A stretch of 64,000 nt of DNA from Amphiscolops sp. MND2022 (GCA_964187785.1 OZ076412.1:46004001-46068000); one strand, 5' to 3'. Positions 10,141 through 31,006 are shown, counted from the stretch's first letter. The notes: generated by a model from the letters alone, not told the origin. Numbers and translations: made by a program.

Positions 10141-10416
<276 letters not shown>

Positions 10417-11017
10417 TTAAACACATATTTGATATTCATAACGTGGCATGTTAACATGGAGTATCTTCGTAACATGCACTGAGTACATGTTAACATTGAG
10501 TACTTGACATTTATCTTAGCAAATGATCACATATCCAGATAAAAACTGTTTGAAATGGTAAGAATGTGCATTTATGAATCAAAAATATCAAGTTACAGTG
10601 AAAGAACTAGAGGCAAAAAAACTTGTTTGAAAACTGATTCAATTGATTCATTCAGCATATGACGAGCATCTGAAAGGAAACGACTGGAACTTTTGTCAGA
10701 AAACCGATCTTTAAATTTCTTAAAAAATGACATCTTTTTGTGCTATTTTTGATCAAACTTCTCTCATCTCTCCTTTTCGGTTATCATTTCTCAACAACAG
10801 TCAAAATTTTCCGGCATTGGACGTTGAAAAAATTGAAAAGAGTAATCCCCCCCCCCACACACAATCTTGAAGCAAACGTTAACTTTGCTTTTCTTCATGC
10901 TCATTGCCCAATTCGGAAAACAGTCTTTCATTGCTTATAGTTGAGGATAATGACCGGTTCGGCCGGTATCCGACTTCAATCAGTTCTACACGGTTGTCCT
11001 GCCGGACGGAAATTTTC

Positions 11018-11116: not shown

Positions 11117-13319
11117 TTTTTCTTTCCGATGCACCTCTAGTGTTCAAGATAATTGCTAGGAACAAAGCAGCACCAACAACCGAAGTGCCTTTCAATGGGC
11201 GATGGCCATTCATGCGGTTCAGCTATCGCATTGTGAGTACTGAATGCGAGTGTCGATAAAAAGTTGTTTTAAAACAAAAGTCACGGTTTTAACACAACAA
11301 CCGTGTTCGTACCTATGGGAAGAGAACCTCTTCAATTCAATTACTTTTATTCTTGGTACCAAATGAGCCCTAATAATTGGCCATTTTACTCTTTGAACAC
11401 CTTGCTGCATTGTGAATAATTGCCTCCCCAAGCTGCTCCAAAGAAACTATGTGTAATTTTCTTGAACACGATCGAGCTTGTTCAAAGGTTAGGAAAGGTA
11501 AGCCTAAAAAGAGCCTGACAGTTCATTCGAGCTTGTTAAATATAATTGGTTCTACATCAAAAATCAGGATTTGCTGTTAAAGCGTAGAAAATTGAGGAGC
11601 GTATATGGATTTGGTGCTTAAAACTACATTTTGTACGCGATTGACAATTTTCATTATATCATATTAACCAAATGCACTTAAGCGTCACAAATGGATGCTG
11701 CATACACTTCTTGCAGAGAGCGTCTTGCTCATTGTATGAAGTCTTTCATAGTTTTTTCCACATCAACTTAAACAAGGTTAAGCGATTGACAAATGCTGTG
11801 ACAAGCAGTTTAATCTATAAATCAAACCATCAGTTTTCATCGAAAAATCAAAATTCAATTACTAGAAAAAGCGGGACAACAATGTTCACGTTATACTTAT
11901 CTCAAAATGGAGAAGATAAGTTCTTAAGGTTGCAAAATGCAGGCTTGAGTCGATTGTTAACATAGTGCGTTATTTATTATTCAAGGGCGTAAATTCTCCA
12001 TAGAAATCGTCAAAAACCACGTGATCCGAAGATCAAACAACAATCAAGTCAAAACGTTCTATTGCCTGCTATGAATGAAATTCACACACCCAACATCAAA
12101 GTCTGCATCTTATTCAGCTCATTGCCGACCGATAGCGCAGTAAACCCTATCGCTTTCAACTTCATCAACCTACAATTATTTATATAAAGCGGTATCAAAA
12201 GCCACCAGGCATGATAGAAGGGACTAAATTCGTCAAAATTCTTGGAGCTCGGACAAAACAACAAATCAGGAGGCACTTTTTCTGTCATATTCAATCACAT
12301 TAAATTCATTGCGAATGCTTCTGACCTCCAAAATTTTAGACGTATCTTGCTTCCGTTGAACCAGAGCCCAATCTAATTCAATTGCTATAATGTTACGTGC
12401 ATAACAAACACTTCCGTAATAACCTTGCCCCTCCCTCCATCTCAGACTGTATGTAATTCACTGTTATATCCACGGGGCCGAAACGATAGAACATGGAGGA
12501 TTCATGTCGAAAGCATGTAACATTTACAACAAGGATTAATTCCTAATCATGTTCATTGCAGTACCAATGTCCGCTAGAGAAATTCCTTTTCTGTCCTTAT
12601 TCGCTCCCAGCAGGAGCCCGACATAAGCCTTTACAAGGAACATTGTTAATACAGTGCAGGGAGGAATAATAAAGCCTATATTGAACAAGAAAGCTGTGGG
12701 CATTTGACATAGTAATGATTCATAAAACATACGCTAGGATCTACAGCAATCTAAAGACAAACATAAATCCTTAGTTCACGACAGGACAAAAGTTGGAAAC
12801 GAAACTGAATCGTAAATAAATCATGAACTGAAGCGAAACGCCAATCGTTAATACCTTTCCAAACTGAACCAAAAAGTAGTAAATTGCGTCAACAACTTCT
12901 CTTCTCTAGGGACAAACACAGCGAGCGGATTCCCTTTAAAGCCCTACATTTGTCCACTTCCAACAGGCCATTAAAAGAAAGACACAACATAAATCGCTTC
13001 CCCCATTGACATGTATTTCAATTAGAACTATATTTAATGTGATATGACAAATCCAATTGTCGCGTTATGACTAACGCTTTAACAAACATAATTAGGTGCT
13101 AAAGTGCAGTTTATATTTAATTAACAAATAAAGAAACAAACATGAACTAGAACTAACGTTTGTTTATGGGGGAGAAAGTTGTAGATGAAGATGGCGGCCA
13201 TAAGGCGGCGGCCATAACGATGGTAATAATGATGATGAAGTACTGTGACGAGAAAGGAATTGCACAAGTGAAGAATTCTATATTATACCGCGTATATTTG
13301 AAATATGAAACCAACTATG

Positions 13320-13386
13320 ATTGGTGAAAGATAAGCCATGCCTGCTACGCAGCGCACGATAAGAAATGCTTGGCTGTATATATACG
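13320..13386 (+). promoter_or_regulatory. Putative LTR U3 promoter (reverse CCAAT box and TATA)
   Basis: ATTGG at 13320-13324 and TATATATA at ~13378, followed by a long pyrimidine tract. The same motifs occur in the 3' LTR. Confidence 0.5.
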
Positions 13387-13834
13387 GCCAACGCAGGCGA
13401 GGAGATTCACACACTTATTGAAAGGGACAGAGCTTAAACTTAAAAGCTCTCGTTTCTCTTCACTTCTCTTCCACTTCTCTCCCCTCACCCCTGCTCTTCT
13501 TTCTTACTTTACCCCCTTTCCTCTCCCTTTACTATTATCTTCCCCTTCAGACTTAGAAAGTCTATTTCTCGCCTTCACATTTCAATTCCGATTGCTATTT
13601 AACTCAACAAAACTTCTTGCTTAATAACTCAGATCCAATAATTCTCTTTTAATCATACCCTTGCATCTTAGAATATTTCTCCACTCATCCTTGATTTAAC
13701 TTCAACTTCCAGAACCAATCTTCCCTTACAAGAAATTTCTAACTTAGAAATTTCTCTTCAATTTCGTCTCCGGTTTGGTGAGTCTGACTATTTGGACCTT
13801 TCAGTAGAGATTTCACTCTCTCTGAGACTTTAAC

Positions 13835-14010
13835 TTAGACTATTTTCCGCTGATTTCAATTCTGCGGTTGACAAAATCTTAGAATATTTTCCGCTGATTT
13901 CAATTCTGCGGTTGACAAAATCTTAGATTATTTTCCGCTGATTTCAATTCGGCGGTTGACAAAATCTTACCTTAGACTATTTTCCGCTGATTTCAATTCT
14001 GCGGTTGACC
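13835..14010 (+). repeat. Four tandem 44-bp units inside the LTR (also at ~30168-30343)
   Basis: TTAGACTATTTTCCGCTGATTTCAATTCTGCGGTTGACAAAATC starting at 13835, 13879, 13923 and 13972. Confidence 0.92.
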
Positions 14011-14676
14011 AAACTATAGCTTAGACTATTCTTATTAGAACTAAATTTCTATGAGGTTGAAGTTACATAAACTCACATAAGAAAAGGGATGATTGAAGTT
14101 TTAAAGTGTCTTATTATGAAAAAGTCTTAATGCTATTCAACTTTCTACTGAATAGAGACATCTAAATCAAAACTCTTCCGTTTAAAATAGTACGGATTTG
14201 TAAATTTTGTTTGAGAAAAAGATTTCCGAAGAAAAAGGGAAATTCTTATTATTTGCAAATAGTTTCATTTTCATAAATGATAAATTGTAAAAGTTATATT
14301 ACTTCTTCTTGTAAAGTGAAGTTGTGATCTTTTATAATCTGAGATTTGTAACAATTGAAAGAAATATGGCTATGTCCAGAAGTTGTTCACTTTCAATATT
14401 CTCAACTCATTCGTAATTAAACATATTTATCCACCATACATTTTCAGTAAACGGGAAGCTCATTTACAAACACCGCCTTGCGCGACTCACGCAATTTCTT
14501 TTGTTCGCACGTACACGCAAGGCACCCCTTTATCAGTAAGTTGCTAATTTATTTGTTGGGACTTATACTTGTTAAATCAATAACAGAACCGTCGCGAGAT
14601 AGTACCTTGTAAAATGCAAACAAGGACTTGACAGATTAAAACTAATAAACAAATTTCACCCATGCGTGCGACAAAC

Positions 14677-14694
14677 TGGTGCGACCAGTGAGGC
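14677..14694 (+). promoter_or_regulatory. Primer-binding site (tRNA-Ile(UAU)-like)
   Basis: TGGTGCGACCAGTGAGGC starts 3 nt after the LTR end, and TGG complements the tRNA CCA. tRNA identity is from recalled similarity to TGGTGCTCCAGGTGAGGC. Confidence 0.8.
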
Positions 14695-15710
14695 TACTTT
14701 TTCTCTTGTAATAGAGAAGTAAATGAGCTATCTGTTAGAATCCCTACTCTCAGAAGTAAGGGTTACTTACTTATTTCTCTTAACATTACTTCTAATTTTC
14801 TTCTTTCTCCTACTGCCTCAATATGTGGCTTCTCTAATCTATATAAATCGTAAAACTGCTAGTAAATACTCTAACAGAATCTCTCCAGCCTAACAGCTTT
14901 GGGAAGAGTTTATGCACTACTCTCTTTCTTTCAATCCCCAAAACCATTTGTTAGAAATGATTTACCTTTACGAAAATACTATGAGATTACCATCAGTCCT
15001 AAACAAGAATGAAACTGACTCTATACGCTTTATTTAAAGGCACAGTTGGGAAATTCACTCTAGTCCGGACGGACACAAATTAAGTAAAAGCCCGCCTAGG
15101 TCTCCTCGGAGGCTGTTTGAAGGCCGTGAGCCCAGTGGGTATCTTGGAACCTATGTAGCATTCCGAGTGGGAAACCTAGTATTCTAGTGATAGTACCCAA
15201 GTGATTGCATGATAGTGATCTGGGCCCCACGCACTTAATCCTAAAGACGAGAGTAACTCCCTCTGTGAACTAGCCGTAGTTATTTTCCTAAAGTTAAAGA
15301 AAGGCTCAAAGAGCGGATGAAAGACCTAGTGGACTGACTGTACTCTTCATAGGTTTTCTTTGGGTTAACTCGGAGGATTGGTATACCCCGAACTACCCTT
15401 TTTACGATAATCTCAACACTACTGGGATTTGTAAGTATCCCCTAAACTGTGGAATCAGAGTACGAAATATAGGAAATGAGCCTAACTTCGACCGAGAAGT
15501 GCTATTTTCATTTTTGCTAGCAGCGTATTAAGGATTTTATGATTTGTCAGACCTGTCTAATAATTATCACTATTAGAATCATAGTACAAACAATTTTTAC
15601 TTTAACTCTTTGCTGTTATTCTCAAAAGCCAAGAGTATCATACCTCATAGAGTCTTTGGCTTATTGTTCTTTGCTTCATCTTCTATCCTTTATAATCTCA
15701 ATAGCTCACA

Positions 15711-17165
15711 ATGGCTGCGCAAAATTACTTGGCTTATCCAGACCTCGGCAGAGACCAATTCACAGGAACAGACCCAGATCAAGATCCTGAACAATTTATA
15801 CAGCTAATTGAAAAGAAGTTCCGTTTCTCTCATGGTGATACCCCAGCAAACGGAGCAGCACTTGACGACTACAACTTCAGGAGAAAATCCTACTTTGCTA
15901 CACTACTAAGAGGACCAGCAGCGGAGTGGTTCGAGACAAGTATCACAGACGCTAACACCTGGCAAGAAATCAGAGAAAGGTTCATCACAAGATTCGCAGA
16001 TGGCCGAAACAAATCCAGACACAGAATGGAAGCAGAGCATGTCACCAGAAGAGATGGAGAAGAGATAAAGAATTTTCTACACAGAATCAAAATTGTTGTG
16101 GGGAAAGGCTGGCCAGATGATCTTGCCGGCGTCGCACAAAACGACAGAAACGCAGAAAGAGCAGCACAAGACCGACAAAGAAGACAAAGGTGCATCGACT
16201 ACTCACTGAGAGGCCTAAGACCTCCAAAACTGAGAGAAAAGGCACACGAATATTTAATGGATCACCCGAATGCAACCTGGGAACAATTCTCCCAAGCTGT
16301 AATAAACAAAGACCTCTCCTACACGGTAACTACCGCCCTAACTGGCGGAGAATCACATTCAGACCCACTCATACAAGAAATGCGAGACGACCTGAAGGGA
16401 ATCAAACTACAAATCAAAGAACAGATGAATAACACAATCAACGCAGTAGAGAAAACTGTAGACCCTAATGCTACAGGTCGAAGAATGGCCACACGATTCT
16501 GTGGCTACTGCCGAACAAATGGGCACACACCTAACTGGTGCAGAAAGAAGATGAGAGATGAAGAAGTGAAGAAGGTTCAAAACGAAGCTAACCCAGAAAG
16601 AAGAATAACATTCACCAACGACTACAACAAAAGAACTGGACCTGAACATGGCTCTAGATTTCAACCAAGATTGCCAGATTCAGAAATCAGAAAACATATG
16701 GCTGTGGCACATCAACTAGCACTGGCTGGAGCTATGCAGTCAAACCCTGCCTGGAATCAATACGATAGACCACAAAGAAAAAATTTCAACCCAGAACGCC
16801 GACCTACGAATACAAGAGTCAATCCTGGTAACCAAAGATTTTCACAAGAAGGGAGAAGACCCTTCCTAAACAATTCTAACAACTCCAGAAGTGTTTCCCC
16901 TGGACCCCAAAGAGCAAGATCTCCGTTCAACTTCAACAGAGACCAGTCTAGCTCCTTTAATCGCAACATACAACCTCTTCCACCAAGAAATAACTCAGTT
17001 TTTCAAAGACCACTAGACAGAAACGAAAGACCCAACACTCCAACTCAATCTTACGAGCAAAGATTCCCAAAAACTAATGACATAGGAAGATCCAACACAG
17101 TACAGTTCTTAGAAACCGACTACTCGGTGAACTCTATTGCCGATTTCCGCCCTTTAAACTACTAA
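15711..17165 (+). CDS. gag: Gag (capsid-like domain, CCHC zinc knuckle, basic N/R-rich tail)
   Basis: 484-aa ORF with LLRGPAAEWF..W.EIRERFITRF retrotransposon-gag motif and CGYCRTNGHTPNWC = CX2CX4HX4C. Confidence 0.95.
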   Translation: MAAQNYLAYPDLGRDQFTGTDPDQDPEQFIQLIEKKFRFSHGDTPANGAALDDYNFRRKSYFATLLRGPAAEWFETSITDANTWQEIRERFITRFADGRNKSRHRMEAEHVTRRDGEEIKNFLHRIKIVVGKGWPDDLAGVAQNDRNAERAAQDRQRRQRCIDYSLRGLRPPKLREKAHEYLMDHPNATWEQFSQAVINKDLSYTVTTALTGGESHSDPLIQEMRDDLKGIKLQIKEQMNNTINAVEKTVDPNATGRRMATRFCGYCRTNGHTPNWCRKKMRDEEVKKVQNEANPERRITFTNDYNKRTGPEHGSRFQPRLPDSEIRKHMAVAHQLALAGAMQSNPAWNQYDRPQRKNFNPERRPTNTRVNPGNQRFSQEGRRPFLNNSNNSRSVSPGPQRARSPFNFNRDQSSSFNRNIQPLPPRNNSVFQRPLDRNERPNTPTQSYEQRFPKTNDIGRSNTVQFLETDYSVNSIADFRPLNY

Positions 17166-17242
17166 GGTCTCCGAAAAATAGAAATAGCAGCAGTGCCCCT
17201 CTAAAATTTAGTCTTAATCTTTATTATTTTGCTGCCGGAGAC
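17150..17242 (+). promoter_or_regulatory. -1 programmed ribosomal frameshift signal
   Basis: In-phase C CCU UUA and U UUA AAC heptamers just before the gag stop. Stem GTCTCCG(17167-73)/CGGAGAC(17236-42) with inner GCAGCA/TGCTGC. The -1 frame is open into the protease. Confidence 0.85.
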
Positions 17243-20200
17243 TCACAAAAAGATAGTGGCTTAGAAATCGAATTTCTACTAGACACTGGGGCAACATCTT
17301 CAATCATCAACTACAGGACCTTTAGAGAACTTTGCCGGTTTCAACAAGACCTAGAACTTAGTAGAAGCAATAACACAACACGGAACTACTCTGGGCAGAT
17401 CATCCCTATGATGGGATACATCACCCTCAAACTCTACTACGATTCCGATGGACAACATAACTTCCCATTAACAGTCTGGATAACAGAGATGAAAACCCAA
17501 AACCTCCTTGGAATGAATTTCTGCCAAGAACAAGTTAACAAAATACACTTTGATCTTCCTGGCATAGAACTCAAAAGACTTATAAATACTTTCTGCTATG
17601 GTAGCCTACAACTCAACAAATGTTACCCCTATATATCACAAATTCTCTCAGTCAGAATTCCTCACTCAATGTATATCGAACCAAAGACGACAAGATGTTA
17701 CAAATTCGCACCAGAAAACACTAATAACTCATTTCCTCCTGGATCTACGTTCCTACCGAACAGGAAGGCAGTTTCTACTGGACTTAACTTCATAAATGTC
17801 CTCTGCACACGATTTGAGAAGACTTTACCAATCGTCATGGAAAACAACAAAAACCATACAATCACCTTAGTAAAAGGAACTATCGGATACTCAATGCTTG
17901 ACGTATTAGACCAAGAAATTCCGAAATACCAAATTAGAAACCCGACAGAACTCGCATATGCTATCCTAAACGAAAACGAAGAATACAACGACTGTTTCCT
18001 ATTACACTCTACCATTCCTTCACAAGATATGAACGATTGCCTCAGAATAGAAGGAGGAAACTCGAAAACAATACTCAGCAGACCAGACCCTATCATCATC
18101 TTCGTCCCGGCCGACCTAAAGCCAGCCAAAGGCTTCTCAAAAGAAATCCTAACGAAAATACCTTCACTTAAGGATACATGCGCAAAACAGAAACCACAGA
18201 AAGGAGAAACCATACCCTACTGGGACGAAACTCTGAAACGATTTATATATGTTCTGATTACGAAAGCAAAATCAAAAGACAAGATTGACCCACAATTACT
18301 AGTTCAATCTCTCGAAACTCTAAAAGCACACGCCAAAATGAGCGGCATCAAAACTATATCCATGCTACGGGAAGCCTCAGAGCTAGAAGACTTCCAATGG
18401 CAAGACGTCACTCAACTCATTCAAGACGTATTTGCATACTCAGAAATACAACTCCGAATTTATACAAGAAACGAACTAGATGTCTATGCCATGACTACAA
18501 GAGGAGACCCCGAATACGTACTAGAAGATGAGATACAACAATTTTCCGAGCAATTTCATCTCAAACATAGAGAGTTGGAGACAGACTTCACGAGCGACGC
18601 AAAGTCCTGTCAACCACCCTGCGATGAGCAATTTAAAATCTTCAGGCCAAAAGAAGACAACGAACGGCTGATCGAGTACTACCTTCAGTATCAAAATAAG
18701 GAAGCAGTGCGATACATTAAAGAATTCGACTTTCGCTACTCAGACCTCACAGACGAAGAACTGGTTCTCCTAATAGACTTACTAATGGACGCAAGAGATG
18801 TATACTCCCAACACAAATTTGACGTAGGGAAAACCAGACAAAAATTTAACATTAAACTAGAACCTGGAGCAATTCTAAAGAGACAGAGACCCAGCAAAGT
18901 ACCACTTCACCTACGAGAAAAGCTAGAGAAACTACTCACACAACTCAAAGACGCTGACATCATCAGAGAAATGGGCGACGATGAAGAAATGGGATCCTTA
19001 TTTGTGAATCCTATTATACTACAACCAAAACATGACTATGTCAAGCTGATCATAGATGCGAGATATCTAAACTCGGTGACAGATCTAACAAATTATTCCT
19101 GGCCCTTAGAACCGATCCAAACCATAATGACACTAATAAATGGAAACATCTTCTCAGTAAGTGATCTCTCCTGTGCATTTCACCAAGTCCCATTAGACGA
19201 GCCCACGCAAAAACTCACCAGCTTCATCATTGGCGGAAAACAATACACCTTCACCAGGGGATTCTATGGACTCAAGGGATTACCAAGCTTCTTTAGTAGA
19301 ATGATGACTATCCACTTCGAACCCCTCATCAAAAGGAAACAGGCAATTACATACATCGACGACACGTTGATGCAAGCCAAAAACAAACAAGAAATGTTCA
19401 CGGTAATTCAAGAATACCATAACTTACTGCGGAAAGCCGGACTCAAGGCAGCACCAGATAAGACACTCTTCTTCTTAAGGAAAGTCAAGTTTTTGGGACA
19501 CGTGATAGCAGCCGAAGGAATACAACCCGTCGCAAAACGAGTAAAAGACCTACACAATCTCAAATCACCAAAGACCAAAACCGAAGTGAAAAGCTTCTTA
19601 GGAGCTTTGGGCTTCTATAGCTGCTACATCAAGAATCTTCATGTCGATAGTCGACCTTTTTACGAACTCACCAAGAAAGATACAAATTTTTGCTGGAACC
19701 AAGAACACGAAGACCTTTTCCAGGAAATAAAGAAAAGAATTACCGAAGACACAGTGCTCGCAATACCCTCGACAAAATACCCCTTTCACATACACGTCGA
19801 CTCGTCAAACGTTGGGACAGGATGTATCCTCATCCAACAATTCCCAGAAGGGAAACGGATCATTTCCTTCAACTCAAGAGTTTTCGCAAAGGAAGAACAA
19901 AAGATGTCCACACTACACAGAGAATTATGTGGCATAGTCTCAGCTCTTCAGACGTATGAACACTACATCATCGGATCTCCCTTCCCCATCTACCTATACT
20001 GCGATCACAAGCCGATTCTTTATCTCTGGGGAAGAAAGGGACAAATTTCACCCCGTTTTTTCAGGTACCAAGTAATTATATCTAAATTCCCGAACCTCAA
20101 GATAATTTGGACTCCAGGAAGCAACCTAGCCTTCCCTGATATACTCAGTCGAAACGTCTCCATCGAGGAACACAAGAAACATCAACTCAGTCACAAAGTC

Positions 20201-22663
20201 ATCCCAACTGACATACACTTTTTCGACGAACATGGAACCCAAGTACACTACAAAATCAAACACGAAGAAAATGAAGAGTCATCCAAGAACGACTTTTACC
20301 CCATCTTGTACGAGAAGGGAAAAGAACGGAAAGTACTTCATCTCCAAAATGATGGGAATAACTTCAAGGTTAACTCTATCTACGAGGAACCTAACCTGCC
20401 GAAAGTAGAGTCAGCACAGAGTTGCCTCGACGCTGGAAGAGAACTTGGAAAATTCGAAGAACTAAGAATCAGGTCAGGAACACGGGATAGCACTTCGGAT
20501 TTATCACAAAACACTTACAGCTCCATCAACAGTGATACGGATGACGAAGCCCTCACAGACAATCAGAGTCAAGAAATAAACGAGACCAACTACGAGCTCA
20601 ACACAGAAGATCCCATCGCACGTAACCCAAGTCTTCCCAAAAACGCGAAGGCAATAGAACACCTCGATCTACCTACAAATTCAACTGAAAAACAAAAGAC
20701 ACCAACACAGGAACTTGTCAGACAACTTGATAAACTATCCAAAGAAGTAGAACTAAACGTTACAACGATCTTACAAGAACAAATAAATGACCCGGTACTC
20801 AGCGTGGTCCGACAATGGGTAAGAACAGGAAACAAACCCGAACCAAAATCACCAGAGTTACAACACTCAAAAGGCCTCATGCGTTACTTTCAGGAATTCG
20901 ACAGATTATCTATAGAAGGCCAAGGAAACCTCCTTTGTTATAACGAGCCAACTGATGACCCAACAGACGAGAATCTGAGAATCTGTCTACCTCTCTCTCT
21001 ATTTTTAGCTTGCTTTCGTATGGGACATTACAACGACCTCGGCGGCCACATGGGAGCAGAAAAGACCTTCCTCAATGCTAAGAGATTTTACTACTGGCCA
21101 GGGATGCACAACTGGATCTGTGCCCTCACACAAGATTGTGTTAGCTGCCAATCTAACAAATCCAAACAACGGAGAAACAACGAAGTCCCACTGGAAGACT
21201 GCGAAACCGAAACTCAAGTATTCAGAACCATCCACATTGATCACAAAGGACCACTCAATCCTCCCAGTCGTGGAAATTCACATTGCCTTCTGATCATCGA
21301 CGCCTTCTCACGTTACCTGATGGCATACCCAGTCAGAGACACAGGAGCACAATCTACAATCAATGCGATGGAAAAATGGATTATGCACTATGGCATCCCT
21401 CAATCTATCGTACATGATAGAGGAACAGCTTTCGTGAACACTGAATTCGTCAATTGGACTAAAGAGTTTGGCATTACACTTCGACCAAGAACCGCACACT
21501 CACCCTGGACAAATGGCAAAGTAGAAACTCAAAATCAACACATTGCAAGATACTGGAGAAACTTCCTAAACGAATCAGGAAACAACTGGGCCCAACTAGC
21601 TGCCAAATTTGCATTCGCCCACAACACAAGCGTCAACTACACGACTGGAAAGACCCCCTACGAGATAGTGTTTTGCAATAAACCACAGATACCTATGAGT
21701 CTGAAGCTGGGACTCTACAGGAACAAAAACAAGAACTGCAAATCACAATTCTGTCAAGGATTACCTCCTCATTGCCATAGCGAAAACCAAGTCAAAAACG
21801 AACTACTAAATGGACTATTACGACCACAACTATCACAAAGCTTATTGGAACGAGAAACAGCCTTCAAAAAGGTCTACTCATCCACATATGAAAAGTGCAG
21901 AAAACAAACAGCTCAATCACACACCTACAGGAACAGATTTAAACTTGGGAACCACCTCAACATTGGACAAAAGGTTCTGCTAGAGAACCATCGAAAAGAC
22001 CTCTCCAAAAGCCAAAAACTCCAACAACTGCGACTAGGACCCTTTACGGTTACCAAACGAATTACAAATACAACTTACCAAATAATGGAAGATCAAAACC
22101 CCGAGAATCTCCGAACTGTACATAGGAACCATCTAATAGAATACTTCCCTAAAGAAGAAACACTCCCCCCTCTTATCGAAGAATACACTACTCCCCACCG
22201 TGGAGACACGGATTTTTATAACAATCTTGTCAAAGGAAGAATTGAACAACTTAATGTTTCAGGACCACAAAAACTCGGAGACCTCTGCATATTGCCAGTA
22301 CGGAATCAACAAAACCAAATACTTGCCCGCAAAAGAACGCAAACCCCCCAGAGCACAGACTCTGGTATCATCTCTCCAGAAAATCAGTTGTTGTCAACTC
22401 CCAAGACTCCCGATCAGCCTTCGACATCACATCCTCAAAACGCAGCAACCCCTATCCTGACGTTAACTCAACGTCAACCAACTCCAGCACCCCCAACTAA
22501 CACCCCGGCATCGTCTACCAAGTCAACGACTCCCTTGCAAGAGTTACGAAAGGCTGTTGCCCGCCAAATAGAGAGAAATCCACGTTATCAGCGAGCACAA
22601 CCCAATCAACCAGCACGACAGTCCATACTTCGTGAAAGGACTAGAATTGGTTACAAAGAATAA
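17159..22663 (+). CDS. pol: Pol: aspartic protease - dUTPase-like region - macrodomain - RT - RNase H - integrase
   Basis: FLLDTGATSSII upstream of the tracked ATG in the same frame. YIDD RT motif; DSS..ELCGI..CDHKP..DILSR RNase H; H-H-C-C plus IHIDH/VHDRG/KVE integrase; GPF motif. No internal stops. Confidence 0.97.
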   Translation, partial: LLRSPKNRNSSSAPLKFSLNLYYFAAGDSQKDSGLEIEFLLDTGATSSIINYRTFRELCRFQQDLELSRSNNTTRNYSGQIIPMMGYITLKLYYDSDGQHNFPLTVWITEMKTQNLLGMNFCQEQVNKIHFDLPGIELKRLINTFCYGSLQLNKCYPYISQILSVRIPHSMYIEPKTTRCYKFAPENTNNSFPPGSTFLPNRKAVSTGLNFINVLCTRFEKTLPIVMENNKNHTITLVKGTIGYSMLDVLDQEIPKYQIRNPTELAYAILNENEEYNDCFLLHSTIPSQDMNDCLRIEGGNSKTILSRPDPIIIFVPADLKPAKGFSKEILTKIPSLKDTCAKQKPQKGETIPYWDETLKRFIYVLITKAKSKDKIDPQLLVQSLETLKAHAKMSGIKTISMLREASELEDFQWQDVTQLIQDVFAYSEIQLRIYTRNELDVYAMTTRGDPEYVLEDEIQQFSEQFHLKHRELETDFTSDAKSCQPPCDEQFKIFRPKEDNERLIEYYLQYQNKEAVRYIKEFDFRYSDLTDEELVLLIDLLMDARDVYSQHKFDVGKTRQKFNIKLEPGAILKRQRPSKVPLHLREKLEKLLTQLKDADIIREMGDDEEMGSLFVNPIILQPKHDYVKLIIDARYLNSVTDLTNYSWPLEPIQTIMTLINGNIFSVSDLSCAFHQVPLDEPTQKLTSFIIGGKQYTFTRGFYGLKGLPSFFSRMMTIHFEPLIKRKQAITYIDDTLMQAKNKQEMFTVIQEYHNLLRKAGLKAAPDKTLFFLRKVKFLGHVIAAEGIQPVAKRVKDLHNLKSPKTKTEVKSFLGALGFYSCYIKNLHVDSRPFYELTKKDTNFCWNQEHEDLFQEIKKRITEDTVLAIPSTKYPFHIHVDSSNVGTGCILIQQFPEGKRIISFNSRVFAKEEQKMSTLHRELCGIVSALQTYEHYIIGSPFPIYLYCDHKPILYLWGRKGQISPRFFRYQVIISKFPNLKIIWTPGSNLAFPDILSRNVSIEEHKKHQLSHKVIPTDIHFFDEHGTQVHYKIKHEENEESSKNDFYPILYEKGKERKVLHLQNDGNNFKVNSIYEEPNLPKVESAQSCLDAGRELGKFEELRIRSGTRDSTSDLSQNTYSSINSDTDDEALTDNQSQEINETNYELNTEDPIARNPSLPKNAKAIEHLDLPTNSTEKQKTPTQELVRQLDKLSKEVELNVTTILQEQINDPVLSVVRQWVRTGNKPEPKSPELQHSKGLMRYFQEFDRLSIEGQGNLLCYNEPTDDPTDENLRICLPLSLFLACFRMGHYNDLGGHMGAEKTFLNAKRFYYWPGMHNWICALTQDCVSCQSNKSKQRRNNEVPLEDCETETQVFRTIHIDHKGPLNPPSRGNSHCLLIIDAFSRYLMAYPVRDTGAQSTINAMEKWIMHYGIPQSIVHDRGTAFVNTEFVNWTKEFGITLRPRTAHSPWTNGKVETQNQHIARYWRNFLNESGNNWAQLAAKFAFAHNTSVNYTTGKTPYEIVFCNKPQIPMSLKLGLYRNKNKNCKSQFCQGLPPHCHSENQVKNELLNGLLRPQLSQSLLERETAFKKVYSSTYEKCRKQTAQSHTYRNRFKLGNHLNIGQKVLLENHRKDLSKSQKLQQLRLGPFTVTKRITNTTYQIMEDQNPENLRTVHRNHLIEYFPKEETLPPLIEEYTTPHRGDTDFYNNLVKGRIEQLNVSGPQKLGDLCILPVRNQQNQILARKRTQTPQSTDSGIISPENQLLSTPKTPDQPSTSHPQNAATPILTLTQRQPTPAPPTNTPASSTKSTTPLQELRKAVARQIERNPRYQRAQPNQPARQSILRERTRIGYKE

Positions 22664-22670
22664 CCTTACT

Positions 22671-23052
22671 ATGCCGTGCCATAAAGTCTATCTAAACTTG
22701 CCTTGGCAAGTCCCGCGAGAACTCCAGTCCTTAGGAATTTTGCAGGTTACGATTACTAAAATCTACTGGACCTACAAAAACAGTTAGAATTTGTTTCTAC
22801 TCCAACGACCCAGATCCTAGCCCACATAAACAACCTACGCCTAGAAAATCTAACCTTCATATACACCCAGAATCACCTACTTTCGCCCGCTTATATCAAC
22901 ACTTAGCCTATTATGCCGTCACCCACCATGACCCTATCCTAGAGGAACTACTATCCTACATGCCTACCCTGATACCTGACCTACAACCTTCATTACCTAA
23001 CACACAAAAAGACTTATTCTGCTGTTCTACTATCTCCTCGCCTAGCTCCTAG
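22671..23052 (+). pseudogene. Accessory ORF A, split by a 1-nt frameshift
   Basis: ATG at 22671 gives 38 aa. The +1 frame is open 22735-23052 (105 codons, checked manually). Removing one A from the A5 run at 22776-22780 gives one ~126-aa ORF. Confidence 0.55.
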
Positions 23053-23220
23053 CCGGATATTACCGCTTATTCGAAAAATATTATCTTTATTATTATTATT
23101 ATTATTATTAGACTTTTTATCTATACAAATTGTGCAACCCCGAGAAGGAACTTACGAAAAGCAGCAAACACAAAAGCGTAGAAAAATAAAGTATTTCCTG
23201 GAGATGAGAGGCAATAATGC

Positions 23221-23916
23221 CTACTCAACCTCCAGGAAACCTCCCTTCTCTGCAAGTCGCCGCAGCTGAGCCGCCCGCTCCCCCATTGTCCACAATGAAT
23301 AGAGGCGGGTCCACTGACCCCTCTCAAAACTAGTCAGCTGCGAGTAGCCACTTATGTAGGCTCGCAGCTGGAAGACGACTATTTCGCCGAGAGAGGACAG
23401 GAGAGTCTGCTCCCAACGGGCCCCCCAGTTAGCCCGCAAGAAACTAGTTAGAGCATTTGGACCGGGAGGCCCAGAAACAGAAAACCCGGGGGTACCCTGA
23501 AGGGAACTAGTTAATGAAGCCCAGTTTTCTAGGCGGTCGATATCCCTATGGGTAAATAAACCCATAAAACTTTGATCCCCCGGGCTCTCCAAAACACCCT
23601 GCGAGATGGTAGAGGGAGCTTGCGGAAAAGGGCCACTAGTCCTCGGGGCCACAAACGCCACAAAAGACCCACCCCCAGAGGTCCCTGCCTGAGAACCTGA
23701 TGACGAGGGAGCAGAAGAACTGGTGCGCGCTCCGCTCGACGAGGACGGCCCAGCTGACGACGACGATTGTGGCGGCAAAGAGGTAGCGGCAGTGCCCGAC
23801 ACAGACCCTGGAGCAGTAGTCTCCTCATCGGTCGAGGATTCTTCGTAATAGTCGCTATAGTTGTTGTTGTTGTTGTTGCTCATCCCTAAATACAAATTTG
23901 ATTTACTTAAAGTCAT
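23221..23916 (-). CDS. Antisense accessory ORF (S/G-rich N-terminus, helical W-rich C-terminus)
   Basis: 231-aa ORF in a GC-rich island that contrasts with the A/C-rich element. Minus-strand AATAAA at ~23087-23092 downstream of the stop. Confidence 0.7.
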   Translation of the reverse strand: MTLSKSNLYLGMSNNNNNNYSDYYEESSTDEETTAPGSVSGTAATSLPPQSSSSAGPSSSSGARTSSSAPSSSGSQAGTSGGGSFVAFVAPRTSGPFPQAPSTISQGVLESPGDQSFMGLFTHRDIDRLENWASLTSSLQGTPGFSVSGPPGPNALTSFLRANWGARWEQTLLSSLGEIVVFQLRAYISGYSQLTSFERGQWTRLYSLWTMGERAAQLRRLAEKGGFLEVE

Positions 23917-24157
23917 GCAAAATGTTTATAATTATTGATTGAAGTCAACCATATATGTATCACTATTCAACTTAGTCATCAGATATAAAATATAATATCC
24001 TACCCGGACATTTGTCTAGTTTACTACGACGACTCATGAAGTCGTAATCCTCTCTCCTCTACAAACACCCCCAAAAACGCAATGAAATAACTGATGATTC
24101 CATTCTCAGATTTGCTATGTTTGATGCACACACGCCACAAGGCATAACAGCTCACTG

Positions 24158-24379
24158 ATGATCATAATATTCAAAATTGACAACAGACTTTCCCAGATAA
24201 CTGATATTCAGAAGGAACCCTCAACACAGAACATAATCATACAAGCCTACGCAATCGCAGAAGAAGAGAGTGAAACCTACACGTGTGTGCCAGCATCACC
24301 TATCTACCCACTACTGGAGAGTCTACTATATAATAACACACCTACCGAAGTCTTCACAAGAGCCAAGTCAGTCCTTTAA
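24158..24379 (+). CDS. Accessory ORF B (73 aa), unknown function
   Basis: ATG overlaps an upstream TGA (TGATG). Stop overlaps the next start (TAATG). Confidence 0.65.
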   Translation: MIIIFKIDNRLSQITDIQKEPSTQNIIIQAYAIAEEESETYTCVPASPIYPLLESLLYNNTPTEVFTRAKSVL

Positions 24380-24774
24380 TGTCCTCTCCCGCAGTTGCCG
24401 TATTTCGAGGAAATAAGTACTACTTCCACACTCAATTTCAACCTCCGGTTCCTTGGAAACCTATACAACTCACGGGTGAATACGAAATACAGTCAATCTT
24501 TTACGAGATCACTACCTCGGCGATACAAGTCCGTATACTCACACCAGAAGACAAAGAAGCACTAGTCCTCTTCCCTATTCACTTCGGGTCCAAGGAATAC
24601 GCCTACCTATTCCTATCGTTCCAACAATACATACTCCAACACCCCGCTGTCCTTAAAGACAAGGCTTTCGACGACTTGGTTTATTTTATGGATATCACCC
24701 TAGTAACTAACCCCTTTGAAGAAGAGGTTAGAATCAAATATCTTCACACCCTAGTTGAGACCTATGATGTTTAA
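24379..24774 (+). CDS. Accessory ORF C (131 aa), unknown function
   Basis: TAATG-coupled ATG, element-like codon usage, stop overlapping the start region of ORF D. Confidence 0.75.
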   Translation: MSSPAVAVFRGNKYYFHTQFQPPVPWKPIQLTGEYEIQSIFYEITTSAIQVRILTPEDKEALVLFPIHFGSKEYAYLFLSFQQYILQHPAVLKDKAFDDLVYFMDITLVTNPFEEEVRIKYLHTLVETYDV

Positions 24775-25108
24775 AATACAACTCAAATTCCTCTGGCGTC
24801 ACCCGGAAACAAACACACTTCTTGAGATCCTCTCTATAGCCTGGAAAGAGAGCGCCCCCGCACTTCAGATTGAACTCCACAGCCTCCGACCACATCAAAC
24901 GGGACATTGGCTCATCCCTGTCGCAACAGACTCGACAGAAGCAGCAGATCTTGCGAAGGCGCTAACCGACTACAGGGAGATCGCTTACTTAGATCACGTT
25001 CACCCTCTGACCCTTCATCTCCTCAGCAAGCTAATCGATTTCCTCGACGCTCAGAGACGTAACAAACGCTCTCCCAGTCTAAAATCAATCAGTGATAACT
25101 ACAGCTGA
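24764..25108 (+). CDS. Accessory ORF D (~114 aa), unknown function
   Basis: ATGATG at 24764 overlaps the end of ORF C. The track's 24755 start is a TTG. Confidence 0.72.
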   Translation: MMFKIQLKFLWRHPETNTLLEILSIAWKESAPALQIELHSLRPHQTGHWLIPVATDSTEAADLAKALTDYREIAYLDHVHPLTLHLLSKLIDFLDAQRRNKRSPSLKSISDNYS

Positions 25109-25166
25109 ACCTTCACAGATGGTTGAAGTTAGTTTCTTTTACTATTTTTCTTCAGGCACTCTTTGA

Positions 25167-25588
25167 ATAGTAGTGAGGTTACTACTATAAAATTTTAACC
25201 TCCGCTTAGTGTCGTGCCAGCTAAGCTGCCGGTTTGATATTACGGCTTGCCTTTTTACGGCCTTATTTCAGGATCCATAACATTAAACTAAACTAAAAGA
25301 CAAATAAACTTCTCCTTCTCTTAGGTACGTGTGAACAGTAGTGAGGTTACTACTATAAAATTTTAACCTCCGCTTAGTGTTGTACCAGCTAAGCTGCCGG
25401 TTTGATATTACGGCTTGCCTTTTTACGGCCTTACTCCGAAACCTATACTTTAAACAAAAAACAACAATCTTTCCATAAGGCACTTTCCAATAGTAGTGAG
25501 GTTACTACTATAAAATTTTAACCTCCGCTTAGTGTCGTGCCAGCTAAGCTGCCGGTTTGATATTACGGCTTGCCTTTTTACGGCCTTA
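25167..25588 (+). ncRNA. Three near-identical 99-nt structured units separated by unrelated 69- and 56-nt spacers
   Basis: Copies at 25167-25265, 25335-25433 and 25490-25588. Stems and a pseudoknot were predicted by eye. The repeat is certain; an RNA function is inferred. Confidence 0.7.
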
Positions 25589-25656
25589 CCGTGGATCCAC
25601 ATATCTATAAAAAACATTTTTCCTGATTGATTGTCAAAGACTGAAGAATTTCAAAA

Positions 25657-27804: not shown

Positions 27805-27850
27805 AGCCAAAAACATTTTCAAGTTCATTCATTCATTAGTTTACTTTTAG

Positions 27851-28432
27851 AATCTAGAACCACTATTCGACCTACCAAGCCTGGACGACGATACCCTGGA
27901 TCCTATCCCAGAAAGTGACCTAGAAATCGAACCCCTATCTCCTTCAGACTTTTTGACACCAGACTCGTCTACAACAATTACCTTCCTTCCCGACCCCCCC
28001 GACTCAACGGTCCCATCATCACCCTCAAAATCTCCAACTCCAACCTTCACACCAACGCCATCCGACCAACTCCCCTTTCCTTTGTCATTCACAGGAGACA
28101 TACCACCAATCCCGTCAACACAACATCCTCCTAGATTTGGTGGAAAGGACATCAGAAGAACCACACCACAAAAACACTATCATGAATGGAACAACGAGAT
28201 AGCCGATGAAGCACCCTTACATAACCAACATAAAAGGGAATACTTCACTAGAAAAGCCAGATACGTTAAAAAACCTAGGTTTAACGCAAACCTAAAGTAT
28301 TCTCTACTCCCACAGTTTTCAACCTGGAAAATCGTCTTTTGGGACAACAAAAGACAAGAATACACTATTGAGAACCCTGCACTGAAGGGACAGCGGCTGA
28401 CAGTTCCCTTAAGATCCATATCTGCACAATGA
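27851..28432 (+). CDS. ATG-less accessory exon (acidic, P/S/T-rich, then basic), probably spliced
   Basis: Frame opens immediately after ttcattcattagtttacttttag| and is open for 193 codons. Stop overlaps the next ATG (ATGA). Confidence 0.7.
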   Translation, partial: NLEPLFDLPSLDDDTLDPIPESDLEIEPLSPSDFLTPDSSTTITFLPDPPDSTVPSSPSKSPTPTFTPTPSDQLPFPLSFTGDIPPIPSTQHPPRFGGKDIRRTTPQKHYHEWNNEIADEAPLHNQHKREYFTRKARYVKKPRFNANLKYSLLPQFSTWKIVFWDNKRQEYTIENPALKGQRLTVPLRSISAQ

Positions 28433-29367
28433 GCAAAAAATTAAACCCAAATGCCACCCCCTTCATCCCAAAACACAAACCCTACCTACCGATCCCTAAC
28501 CCCGACTGGCCACCTATGCCTGAAGAAAACGATCAAGAAGAACATGCAAACCTCGAAGGAGTGGAAAGACTAAATATGTGGATTAGTGAATGGGAGAAAT
28601 CAACTAGTACCTATAACCAGGGAACAAAAAGCACACCGCTTCGAAAGTCCTTCCCTTTAACGGACATTAATCAACCCCAAAAGAAGTTAGAAAACCGAAT
28701 CAAACTGCTATGTACCTCAATCGAAGAGGCACGAGATAAACGTCAACAATTGGAAGTCACTATCTTCGATTTGCGAGCGACAATCAAACACCAAAGCTCC
28801 CTCCTCAGCAGAGCGAGCCAGATTGAAGCGAACGGTAAAGATTTTATCACTTGGCAAGTTTCCGCCTTCTCCACACTTTACCGAAAAGCAAGGACCTCTC
28901 CAGACGATCCCTTTCACAACATCAAAAACAGCTTCGCGAGCCCTATTTACCCAACATACCTATCAGGCTGCAAAATTTCCTTCAGAATATTCCCTTACGG
29001 GATAAACATCTTCCGTGGGACCCACTCTTCTATTAGCTGTGAACTTCATTATAGCGACTTCACTCACCCACAAACATGGCCCTTTGATAAAACAGTAGAA
29101 GTCGAAATACTTGATCAGAAGGACGAAGGCAACAAGTGGTCCACACTTTTCCCAATCAACCCCCACAACCACGAAGATACCCTTCACAATCTCTACACGC
29201 ACCCGAACCTCCTCAAAGAAGACTTCATCCCTCATACGAAGTTACTTGTCAACTTCAGAGAAGCATTCCTAAACAATGACTCTATAATATTTAGAATCAA
29301 ATTTAAGGAACCTTCCCCTCAGTCACTCGCGCTACATAACTCCCCCTTCTTTCAGTCTGACCCATAA
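28429..29367 (+). CDS. PAM2 motif + coiled coil + TRAF-C/MATH domain protein
   Basis: LNPNATPFIP at the N-terminus. ITWQV, SPIY, GTHSS, WPF, ILDQ and FLNNDSIIFRI match TRAF-C motifs. No RING or zinc fingers. Confidence 0.87.
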   Translation: MSKKLNPNATPFIPKHKPYLPIPNPDWPPMPEENDQEEHANLEGVERLNMWISEWEKSTSTYNQGTKSTPLRKSFPLTDINQPQKKLENRIKLLCTSIEEARDKRQQLEVTIFDLRATIKHQSSLLSRASQIEANGKDFITWQVSAFSTLYRKARTSPDDPFHNIKNSFASPIYPTYLSGCKISFRIFPYGINIFRGTHSSISCELHYSDFTHPQTWPFDKTVEVEILDQKDEGNKWSTLFPINPHNHEDTLHNLYTHPNLLKEDFIPHTKLLVNFREAFLNNDSIIFRIKFKEPSPQSLALHNSPFFQSDP

Positions 29368-29392
29368 CTCATTTATTTTCTTTCATCCTGCC

Positions 29393-29403
29393 AGGGGGGT
29401 GAG
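29393..29403 (+). promoter_or_regulatory. Polypurine tract
   Basis: AGGGGGGTGAG, 1 nt before the 3' LTR TG. Confidence 0.85.
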
Positions 29404-29404
29404 C

Positions 29405-31006
29405 TGTCGCGTTATGACTAACGCTTTAACAAACATAATTAGGTGCTAAAGTGCAGTTTATATTTAATTAACAAATAAAGAAACAAACATGAACTAGAAC
29501 TAACGTTTGTTTATGGGGGAGAAAGTTGTAGATGAAGATGGCGGCCATAACGATGGTAATAATGATGATGAAGTACTGTGACGAGAAAGGAATTGCACAA
29601 GTGAAGAATTCTATATTATACCGCGTATATTTGAAATATGAAACCAACTATGATTGGTGAAAGATAAGCCATGCCTGCTACGCAGCGCACGATAAGAAAT
29701 GCTTGGCTGTATATATACGGCCAACGCAGGCGAGGAGATTCACACACTTATTGAAAGGGACAGAGCTTAAACTTAAAAGCTCTCGTTTCTCTTCACTTCT
29801 CTTCCACTTCTCTCCCCTCACCCCTGCTCTTCTTTCTTACTTTACCCCCTTTCCTCTCCCTTTACTATTATCTTCCCCTTCAGACTTAGAAAGTCTATTT
29901 CTCGCCTTCACATTTCAATTCCGATTGCTATTTAACTCAACAAAACTTCTTGCTTAATAACTCAGATCCAATAATTCTCTTTTAATCATACCCTTGCATC
30001 TTAGAATATTTCTCCACTCATCCTTGATTTAACTTCAACTTCCAGAACCAATCTTCCCTTACAAGAAATTTCTAACTTAGAAATTTCTCTTCAATTTCGT
30101 CTCCGGTTTGGTGAGTCTGACTATTTGGACCTTTCAGTAGAGATTTCACTCTCTCTGAGACTTTAACTTAGACTATTTTCCGCTGATTTCAATTCTGCGG
30201 TTGACAAAATCTTAGAATATTTTCCGCTGATTTCAATTCTGCGGTTGACAAAATCTTAGATTATTTTCCGCTGATTTCAATTCGGCGGTTGACAAAATCT
30301 TACCTTAGACTATTTTCCGCTGATTTCAATTCTGCGGTTGACCAAACTATAGCTTAGACTATTCTTATTAGAACTAAATTTCTATGAGGTTGAAGTTACA
30401 TAAACTCACATAAGAAAAGGGATGATTGAAGTTTTAAAGTGTCTTATTATGAAAAAGTCTTAATGCTATTCAACTTTCTACTGAATAGAGACATCTAAAT
30501 CAAAACTCTTCCGTTTAAAATAGTACGGATTTGTAAATTTTGTTTGAGAAAAAGATTTCCGAAGAAAAAGGGAAATTCTTATTATTTGCAAATAGTTTCA
30601 TTTTCATAAATGATAAATTGTAAAAGTTATATTACTTCTTCTTGTAAAGTGAAGTTGTGATCTTTATTAATCTGAGATTTGTAACAATTGAAAGAAATAT
30701 GGCTATGTCCAGAAGTTGTTCACTTTCAATATTCTCAACTCATTCGTAATTAAACATATTTATCCACCATACATTTTCAGTAAACGGGAAGCTCATTTAC
30801 AAACACCGCCTTGCGCGACTCACGCAATTTCTTTTGTTCGCACGTACACGCAAGGCACCCCTTTATCAGTAAGTTGCTAATTTATTTGTTGGGACTTATA
30901 CTTGTTAAATCAATAACAGAACCGTCGCGAGATAGTACCTTGTAAAATGCAAACAAGGACTTGACAGATTAAAACTAATAAACAAATTTCACCCATGCGT
31001 GCGACA
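29405..31006 (+). repeat. 3' LTR (1602 bp)
   Basis: Starts TGTCGC right after the PPT and ends GCGACA, followed by the TSD CAAT. Confidence 0.97.

Follow-up and report, generated by a model that had tools for sequence, protein, structure and literature searches.

Background

Retrotransposons with long terminal repeats (LTRs) are taught as two- or three-gene elements, and "complex" genomes, rich in accessory genes, are seen as the mark of a small number of vertebrate retrovirus genera. The question raised by the locus described here is whether an LTR element of the Ty3/gypsy type (Metaviridae) carries a genuine set of accessory genes. The locus lies in a 64,000-nucleotide (nt) stretch of DNA from Amphiscolops sp. 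MND2022 (GCA_964187785.1 OZ076412.1:46004001-46068000), the whole of which is called the window below and in whose numbering all coordinates are given; positions 13058-31006 are a single LTR element of 17,949 bp. A first-pass annotation, made from the sequence alone, had read this region as an 18-kb Gypsy element with uninterrupted gag, pol and env and an unusual number of additional open reading frames (ORFs), and had proposed it as a new complex lineage. We report that seven accessory ORFs are, judged by their conservation and substitution pattern, real genes under purifying selection, and that the Pol polyprotein contains a macrodomain between the protease and the reverse transcriptase (RT). 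RNA viruses are known to use macrodomains as a counter-defence against PARP enzymes.

Ty3/gypsy elements with F-type or glycoprotein B (gB)-type Env have been reported across Metazoa (eLife 2026, PMC13524379), a chuvirus (Jingchuvirales)-type glycoprotein has been captured by mosquito retrotransposons (PMC7642597, PMC10084718), and extra ORFs are known in rotifer LTR elements (PMC5408684). The planarian giant gypsy-like element Burro/GYPSM1 carries MATH_TRAF_C, BIR, BCL2-like, ankyrin and dUTPase domains (Arkhipova & Yushenova 2019, PMC6431247), and in Oikopleura the Tor3b/4b elements use an internal promoter, located between pol and env, to express env (Henriet et al. 2015, PMC4402516).

Results and discussion

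Seven accessory ORFs under purifying selection

A search with Pol found the close family of this element only in European Nucleotide Archive (ENA) assemblies, from which three relatives were fetched with their surroundings: L004 (Pol 92% identical), L002 (63%) and L003 (55%). All three carry LTR pairs of their own, with 99-100% identity over the pieces compared, which implies elements of about 18-20 kb, and they share the gene order; together with the window element they represent four diverged subfamilies, each with near-identical LTRs. The four small sense ORFs, the antisense ORF, the ATG-less ORF and the PAM2-TRAF ORF of the first-pass annotation were all recovered, with the correction that the ORF following pol carries one frameshift in the window version. 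The accessory features are as follows.

22671-23052 (+): ORF-A, after pol; 128 amino acids (aa) where intact, one frameshift in the window version
23221-23916 (-): ORF-AS, antisense; 231 aa, N-terminal half rich in Ser, Pro, Gly, Ala and Thr, C-terminal half conserved
24158-24379 (+): ORF-B; 73 aa, its stop sharing one base with the start of ORF-C
24379-24774 (+): ORF-C; 131 aa
24764-25108 (+): ORF-D; 114 aa from its ATG, with an 11-nt overlap with the end of ORF-C
27826-27850 (+): pyrimidine-rich tract ending in TTTAG, splice-acceptor-like, invariant in all four elements
27851-28432 (+): ORF-E; ATG-less, 193 codons, N-terminal half acidic/Pro-rich, then a basic stretch, then a strongly conserved domain of about 75 aa at the C-terminus
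28429-29367 (+): ORF-F; 312 aa, with a PAM2-like motif (28429-28473) and a coiled coil plus TRAF-C/MATH domain (about 28720-29301)

The ratio of nonsynonymous to synonymous substitution rates (dN/dS) was determined against L004, where dS is 0.6-0.9 for the core genes and 0.5 to >2 for the accessory ORFs. The ratio is 0.06 for gag, 0.05 for pol and 0.03 for env. Among the accessory ORFs it is 0.05 for ORF-A (comparing the L004 version with the intact version in L001, an ENA assembly of the same locus), 0.04 for ORF-B and 0.06 for ORF-C; the values for ORF-D (0.08), ORF-E (0.04), ORF-F (0.15) and ORF-AS (0.12) are rough, dS being saturated. In the more diverged L002, six of the seven ORFs have a significant protein match (29-54% identity; expectation value (E) 1e-11 to 1e-26): ORF-A at 42% identity, ORF-AS at 30-36% (tblastn E 1e-22), ORF-C at 31% (E 9e-15), ORF-D at 33% (E 9e-20), the C-terminal domain of ORF-E at 54%, and ORF-F at 29%. 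ORF-B is marginal: L002 has an ORF of the same length in the corresponding position, and the match is weak (19%, E 0.005). Because the ORFs are kept in relatives with 55-63% Pol identity or show dN/dS of 0.04-0.15 against the 92% relative, we conclude from these comparisons that all seven are real genes under purifying selection. Conservation of the accessory ORFs in sister copies was the check that the first-pass annotation had named for itself, and it came out in favor of the proposal.

The antisense gene called for a separate control. ORF-AS is intact in the window, L004 and L002, and when all six frames of the nucleotide alignment were compared, its own frame had the lowest ratio of nonsynonymous to synonymous differences (pN/pS, 0.39), followed by the wobble-sharing frame (0.58) and the others (0.85-1.7); the worry about chance ORFs on the A-poor minus strand is therefore answered. 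A further antisense ORF within pol (17698-18213) appears conserved only because pol is conserved. ORF-A and ORF-AS converge on a 170-nt AT-rich spacer that contains a (TAT)n run (23079-23110) and AATAAA once per strand (23086 and 23185); this pair could possibly serve as the poly(A) signals of two convergent transcripts.

ORFs A, AS, B, C, D and E have no significant sequence match in Pfam or the PDB. ORF-C and ORF-D match each other (hhalign E 1.5e-4, probability 52%) and may be old duplicates, or distant paralogues. L003 keeps ORF-E and ORF-F, and in the interval from pol to env it has different small ORFs, for which tblastn gives no link to the window ORFs. The same interval of L003 contains about 11 copies of a 61-nt unit (L003:18211-18873) with no counterpart in the window.

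ORF-E has no ATG in the window, L004 or L002, and its frame opens exactly past the TTTAG-ending tract, which resembles a 3' splice site. No accessory module is better conserved than its C-terminal domain (47-54% identity in L002 and L003), which also occurs twice (10278-10520 and 11595-11822) in L005, a more distant element from NCBI assembly GCA_013332775.1 in which neither a macrodomain nor a MATH match was found; the two occurrences there fall in two ORFs, each of about 290 aa, that lie downstream of env. A single-sequence AlphaFold model of the domain was unusable (predicted local distance difference test score (pLDDT) 51).

The start of ORF-F overlaps the stop of ORF-E as ATGA. Pfam matches are to MATH_2 (2.4e-9), TRAF-mep_MATH (2.6e-8) and PAM2 (0.0022), and residues ~98-291 match the coiled coil and TRAF-C domain of TRAF2, TRAF4 and TRAF5 in the PDB (E down to 3e-6). 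These PDB matches begin in the coiled coil (residues 98-131); no RING or TRAF zinc fingers were found, and residues 1-130 have no Pfam match besides PAM2. By its domain content ORF-F is a TRAF-domain-only protein and not a canonical TRAF. Its first 15 residues match the 12-residue PAM2 motif, which is kept in the window, L004 and L002 while its flanks are unalignable.

A macrodomain inside Pol

In gypsy-type Pols the spacer between protease (PR) and RT is usually short, far below 400 residues. Here it measures about 400 residues and contains a domain of the TARG1/OARD1 type, to which the ADP-ribosylation function listed in the first-pass annotation can now be assigned. The layout of gag and pol is as follows.

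15711-17165 (+): gag; 484 aa, capsid-like Retrotrans_gag domain, one CCHC knuckle
17081-22663 (+): pol, open -1 frame; PR, macrodomain, RT, RNase H, bridge, integrase and a variable C-terminal tail
17153-17159 (+): heptamer U_UUA_AAC (UUUAAAC), in the gag frame, 3 nt ahead of the gag stop
~17258-17527 (+): protease, with D-T-G motif
~18080-18469 (+): TARG1/OARD1-like macrodomain, between protease and RT
~19133-19507 (+): RT
19694-20089 (+): RNase H
20090-21001 (+): bridge
21002-22135 (+): integrase

As a single sequence the macrodomain matches PDB entry 4j5r with E 1.3e-10, and a profile built from four related elements matches residues 20-145 of the 146-residue chain with E 6e-27; the Pfam Macro match is weak. 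Its dN/dS of 0.055 against L004 indicates purifying selection. The window, L004, L002 and L003 have it; L005 and L006, which are more distant cousins with a Pol that aligns elsewhere, lack it, and it was therefore gained within this lineage. Since its nearest relative is the cellular TARG1 type, with sequence similarity to human OARD1 over almost the whole domain, capture from a host is suggested. The likeness to the macrodomains of positive-strand RNA viruses lies in its being embedded in a replicase polyprotein; the carrier here, in contrast, is a reverse-transcribing element. Of the two residues that we take to be catalytic in human TARG1, a Lys and an Asp, the aligned Lys does not vary among the four elements.

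The same profile, run with HMMER against 1.84 billion representative proteins, found five other gypsy-type Pols with a macrodomain, all from public metagenomes (P0225, P0320, P0259, P0323 and P0287, the last at L012:1152-6107). In three of the five it lies in the RNase H-integrase interval and in two past the integrase, where in one case it is followed by a Tpt1/KptA RNA 2'-phosphotransferase domain. With macrodomains at other positions in five further Pols, capture by retroelement Pols therefore seems to be recurrent. Our literature search found no paper on a macrodomain in an LTR-retroelement Pol.

Gag, Pol and a putative frameshift site

Gag and pol are both uninterrupted, as had been annotated. 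From 17081 on, the pol frame is open; it is in the -1 frame relative to gag, with an overlap of 85 nt at the gag 3' end. Slippery heptamers follow the rule X_XXY_YYZ, and UUUAAAC near the gag stop is a candidate slippery site for making Gag-Pol through a -1 frameshift. The protease motif and domain are encoded 5' of the first pol ATG (17408), and Pol must therefore arise as a Gag-Pol frameshift product. Pfam matches in Pol are RVT_1, RT_RNaseH_2, Integrase_H2C2 (zinc finger), rve (core) and SH3_Tf2-1. The bridge that links RNase H to integrase is conserved in its N-terminal part; an ADP-ribosyltransferase was considered for this region and rejected, the sole match (E 0.04) lying in a variable acidic linker and amounting to low-complexity noise. 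Beyond its own family the nearest matches of Pol are gypsy-type pols, 24-29% identical.

Env and the triplicated unit upstream of it

25109-25600 (+): triplicated unit directly upstream of env; three cores of about 100 nt with variable spacers
25167-25264, 25335-25431 and 25490-25587 (+): the three cores, each with TATAAAA
25657-27804 (+): env; 715 aa, signal-like N-terminus, 16 Cys, one transmembrane segment, PF24664 (E 4.5e-33)

The env gene is open, and no furin motif is present in its product. An AlphaFold model of Env was built from 24 family members, and Foldseek matched it to the glycoproteins of chuviruses and related viruses (E 6e-18) and to herpesvirus gB (E 9e-8), with probability 1.0 to both and with template modeling (TM) scores that are low owing to the poor model. 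Env is thus predicted to be a class III fusion glycoprotein of the gB type, closest to chuvirus glycoproteins and herpesvirus gB. Among the relatives env is 56-60% and pol 55-63% identical, so that Env evolves along with pol.

The triplicated structured unit of the first-pass annotation stands as to its three copies and the conservation of its cores, while the word "structured" fared poorly, with fold z-scores of about -2. The three cores are almost identical to one another; against L004 they are 89-94% identical and the spacers 56%, and the cores are therefore constrained. Scans for bacterial-type promoters and terminators were discarded as uninformative for a eukaryote. We propose that this TATA-bearing unit might serve env and the genes that follow it as an internal promoter or enhancer, comparable to Tor3b/4b. 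The alternative is that it acts as a folded RNA (an export, packaging or translation element) and not at the DNA level, for which several short inverted repeats in each core can be cited, together with a repeat of 3 x 76 nt, unrelated in sequence, that L003 has in this position and that folds well (z -4.1). However, folding of the window cores is unremarkable, with z -0.4 to -2.1 on the sense strand and a minus strand that is no worse (-2.9); the near-identity of the copies leaves no covariation to support a fold; L002 has no repeat at this position; and the TATAAAA in each core, with the Tor elements as precedent for an internal env promoter, fits the DNA-level reading. We regard the folded-RNA alternative as unlikely, and prefer the promoter or enhancer reading.

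Element anatomy, copies and recent activity

13054-13057 and 31007-31010: target-site duplication CAAT, 4 bp, flanking the element on both sides
13058-14673 (+): 5' LTR, 1616 nt, TG..CA ends
14674-15710 (+): leader, about 1 kb, with two small ORFs (14723-14893 and 15539-15790)
14677-14694 (+): primer-binding site (PBS), 18 nt, starting TGG, 3 nt past the 5' LTR
29393-29404 (+): polypurine tract (PPT), 12-nt purine run adjoining the 3' LTR
29405-31006 (+): 3' LTR, 1602 nt, TG..CA ends

The intact LTRs, target-site duplication, PBS and PPT reported earlier are all present, so that the cis-acting parts for tRNA-primed reverse transcription and integration are complete. Compared by direct-repeat search and pairwise alignment, the two LTRs have 1600 matches, 2 mismatches and one 14-nt indel. 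The first 10 nt of the PBS are found exactly in L002-L005; there are no tRNA or Rfam matches in the window, and no fetched locus contains a tRNA gene to which the PBS could be matched. Each LTR contains a 44-nt tandem array (13834-14013 and 30167-30346; 4 copies, 91% matches), possibly an enhancer-type repeat in U3. The two leader ORFs show dN/dS of 0.2-0.3 on few sites and have homologues in the closest relative only; with no match past it, they were left unsupported as genes.

The paired TG..CA LTRs, short target duplication, PBS and PPT, the order PR-RT-RNase H-integrase, the Ty3-type RNase H and integrase, and the capsid-like Gag with a CCHC knuckle are those of Ty3/gypsy elements (Metaviridae). 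The exact Env protein occurs on three contigs of one sample, namely this locus and two others, at which the copies have 98.9% and 99.1% DNA identity and unrelated flanks. In one sister copy pol is split into two ORFs and the other has a shorter ORF-F. The env cluster at 90% identity has 128 member sequences. The claim of recent activity is thus supported by near-identical LTRs, the target duplication and three ~99% copies at different loci. The ENA assembly of the same locus (L001/L010) differs from window positions 18437-39353 by three indels of 5, 3 and 14 nt and no substitutions; all three are shorter in the window, the sites being ORF-A, the AT-rich spacer and the 3' LTR, and they may be haplotypes or assembly differences in repetitive tracts. 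All genes of the element are open in the window except ORF-A.

Cousin elements are also present in Tara Oceans marine-metagenome contigs (L006-L008; Pol 50% and Env 40% identical). L006 contains chains of abutting ORFs of 75-141 aa before gag (1995-3124) and after env (12063-14060), the last with a faint RING-finger match. Such chains in L006-L008 suggest a wider gene-rich clade in marine hosts.

A host protein-kinase exon lies upstream at 6292-6741 (-) (Pkinase C-lobe, Pfam E 3.4e-8), and downstream at 36997-37308 (-) a glycine-loop-like motif, read by eye and without a Pfam match, marks a possible N-terminal kinase exon. The element is therefore probably inserted in an intron of an animal protein-kinase gene, antisense to that gene. 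Elsewhere in the window there are a LINE-like non-LTR retrotransposon at 47566-51301 (-), with an open 937-aa ORF2 (apurinic/apyrimidinic endonuclease and RT) and an upstream 279-aa ORF, an open 242-aa ORF in three tandem copies at 58099-63529 (-) with a period of 2351 nt and no Pfam match, and an additional 292-aa ORF at 56452-57330.

Comparison with known elements

The closest described relatives in kind are the Ty3/gypsy elements with gB-type env called "ancient errantiviruses" (PMC13524379), which have the same gag-pol-env order, a PBS for tRNA, and a class III Env that has a signal peptide and a single transmembrane segment, and which likewise occur in multiple near-identical copies with Env evolving with pol. 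A further mark of that group is a 'Mini' domain that follows RNase H in the bridge region, the part of the bridge that is conserved here being the N-terminal one. The window element shares with that group intact gag, pol and env, several near-identical copies, a class III Env, a signal peptide and a transmembrane anchor, and a furin site is not required for membership. Three ORFs are reported for those elements, and TRAF, MATH and accessory genes are unmentioned (PMC13524379), in contrast to the 18-20 kb, seven conserved extra ORFs (one of them antisense) and Pol macrodomain found here. The Env of strict Errantivirus (insect gypsy, ZAM, Idefix) is F-type, like baculovirus F and paramyxovirus F, with a furin site and a fusion peptide, a description that this Env does not fit.

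Burro/GYPSM1 resembles the present element in being an oversized gypsy type with host-like domains and in having an extra enzyme domain between PR and RT; in Dugesia the MATH_TRAF_C domain is in a separate accessory ORF, and Burro has a mononegavirus-like fusion glycoprotein. It differs in that a single polyprotein, about 5000 aa long, holds its domains, env comes between gag and pol, and a dUTPase takes the place of the macrodomain, whereas the genes here are separate, lie downstream of pol and follow the order gag-pol-env. The Tor and mosquito elements, compared by description only, are likewise env-bearing LTR elements of invertebrate or tunicate hosts; no comparable accessory set is reported for them, and the Env of Tor is furin-cleaved (PMC4402516), unlike the Env described here.

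Complex retroviruses (deltaretroviruses, lentiviruses and spumaviruses) offer a functional analogy only. Their accessory genes also lie in the pol-env and env-LTR intervals, and an antisense gene, an ATG-less 3' exon behind a splice-acceptor-like site and a -1 Gag-Pol frameshift are points of likeness; however, Pol, integrase and Gag are here of the Ty3/gypsy type, Env is class III and not class I, and none of the accessory proteins has retroviral resemblance in Pfam or PDB searches. Complex retroviruses moreover express their accessory genes from multiply spliced RNAs. The resemblance is in layout, and the element does not belong to the Retroviridae.

The proposal of the first-pass annotation is supported, with one caveat: the kind is already known, from gB-type env Ty3/gypsy elements and from TRAF-C in Burro, and our literature search found no paper describing this gene set. 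What is new is the deeply conserved set comprising the Pol macrodomain, the PAM2-TRAF protein, the antisense gene, the ATG-less exon and the overlapping chains of small ORFs.

Alternative explanations

The extra ORFs could be unused passengers, that is, host-gene fragments or chance ORFs in a C- and A-rich strand. The plus strand of the element is indeed strongly A- and C-rich (A 34%, T 22%, G 17%), which the flanks are not, and this skew makes long chance ORFs on the minus strand likely, as the pseudo-conserved antisense ORF in pol illustrates; the lack of Pfam and PDB matches for six of the seven ORFs fits as well. Against it stand the low dN/dS at dS of 0.5 to >2, the six-frame control won by the correct frame, the protein matches to the relative with 63% Pol identity, and the persistence of the ORFs in ~99% copies at three loci, even where pol is broken. 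The passenger explanation appears to be largely refuted by these data, and we consider it very improbable. Slimmer still is the chance that the 3-kb pol-env interval is a nested mobile-element insertion or an assembly chimera. The interval is unusually long, has a gene on the opposite strand and shows a sharp fall of DNA similarity to L004, yet a direct-repeat search found no internal LTRs or terminal repeats, homologous ORFs occur in the same order in L004 and L002, the interval of L003 is long too, two independent assemblies of the locus differ by three small indels only, and the same layout is found at further loci.

A more serious alternative accepts the genes as real and holds that their products serve the element's own replication and not an interaction with host defence: PAM2 would recruit poly(A)-binding protein for translation or packaging of element RNA, the TRAF domain would serve particle assembly or Env tails as a trimeric adaptor, the targets of the macrodomain would be proteins or nucleic acids of the element itself, and ORF-E would be an RNA export or processing factor. 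The same conservation data fit this explanation. Complex retroviruses need RNA regulators of such kind, and both the retention of PAM2 in diverging surroundings and the wide distribution of the ORF-E domain, the most widely kept of the accessory domains and present twice in L005, are as expected of a core helper. On the other side, TRAF domains and macrodomains in viruses are best known as tools against innate immunity, and the macrodomain and the TRAF ORF are missing in L005 and L006, which keep gag-pol-env; neither is therefore required for the basic cycle. We judge it unlikely that replication accounts for the accessory set, and prefer the reading in which its products act on the host.

Proposed expression and functions

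We propose that genomic RNA from the 5' LTR would yield Gag and, through -1 frameshifting, Gag-Pol, with subgenomic RNAs as the probable templates for the genes further downstream. Splicing onto the conserved acceptor-like site would give access to the ATG-less ORF-E, the ORF-B/C/D and ORF-E/F chains might be translated by termination-reinitiation at their overlapping stop and start codons, and ORF-AS would need an antisense promoter of its own within the 240-nt gap that faces ORF-B. The proposals on splicing, internal promoters, reinitiation and antisense transcription are read from the arrangement of the sequence. Splicing of env codons 1-65 to ORF-E was considered and left unsupported, the in-phase perfect donor being present in the window and L004 and not in L002 or L003.

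As for function, the Pol macrodomain may bind or remove ADP-ribose and so blunt PARP-type antiviral marking, like the macrodomains of RNA viruses. ORF-F, a TRAF domain without the RING/zinc-finger effector part, could be a decoy or adaptor in TRAF-dependent signaling, tied by its PAM2 motif to poly(A)-binding protein, and ORF-E, with its basic stretch and conserved small domain, is a candidate regulator. Judged by homology, the element may be potentially infectious and its accessory genes host-modulating, in the terms of the first-pass annotation.

Several observations weigh against this picture. ORF-A is frameshifted in the window, although it is intact in the second public assembly of the locus and in the sister elements; ORFs A-D and AS are undetected in L003 by tblastn; and the PAM2 match scores 18.0 bits, under the curated Pfam cut-off of 20, the motif being absent in L003. 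At the position aligned with the catalytic Asp of TARG1, the window and L004 have Glu (L002 and L003 have Asp), and the macrodomain may therefore bind rather than hydrolyse its ligand. The Env model is good for residues 60-320 only, with a mean pLDDT of 55.7. No conserved splice donor was found, the leaders included, and the one strong donor, at env codon 65, is shared with the closest relative only.

Taking all of this together, the best joint explanation, which we consider likely, is that the region is a complete and evolutionarily young endogenous retrovirus-like Ty3/gypsy (Metaviridae) element, expressed and acting broadly by the mechanism and functions proposed above. A bolder reading, which we offer tentatively and would ourselves put somewhat below an even chance, is that a Metaviridae lineage, apparently of marine animals, independently evolved the lifestyle of a complex retrovirus, with spliced and antisense accessory genes and an innate-immunity toolkit consisting of the Pol macrodomain, directed at ADP-ribosylation defences, and a TRAF decoy that lacks the RING and is tied to poly(A)-binding protein. 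Macrodomain capture by LTR-retroelement polymerases would on this reading be recurrent, at least five unrelated gypsy-type Pols having one at other positions.

Significance

A gypsy-type family with seven extra genes under purifying selection across deep divergence means that complexity arose outside the Retroviridae. The protein encoded by ORF-F, combining a RING-less TRAF domain with PAM2, is a compact candidate for interfering with TRAF signaling in invertebrate-grade immunity. The Pol macrodomain is the sharpest point, and together with those in unrelated gypsy-type Pols it points to ADP-ribosylation as a battleground between hosts and retroelements. If the complex-lifestyle reading is true, ADP-ribosylation would be a general and so far unrecognized host defence against retroelements.

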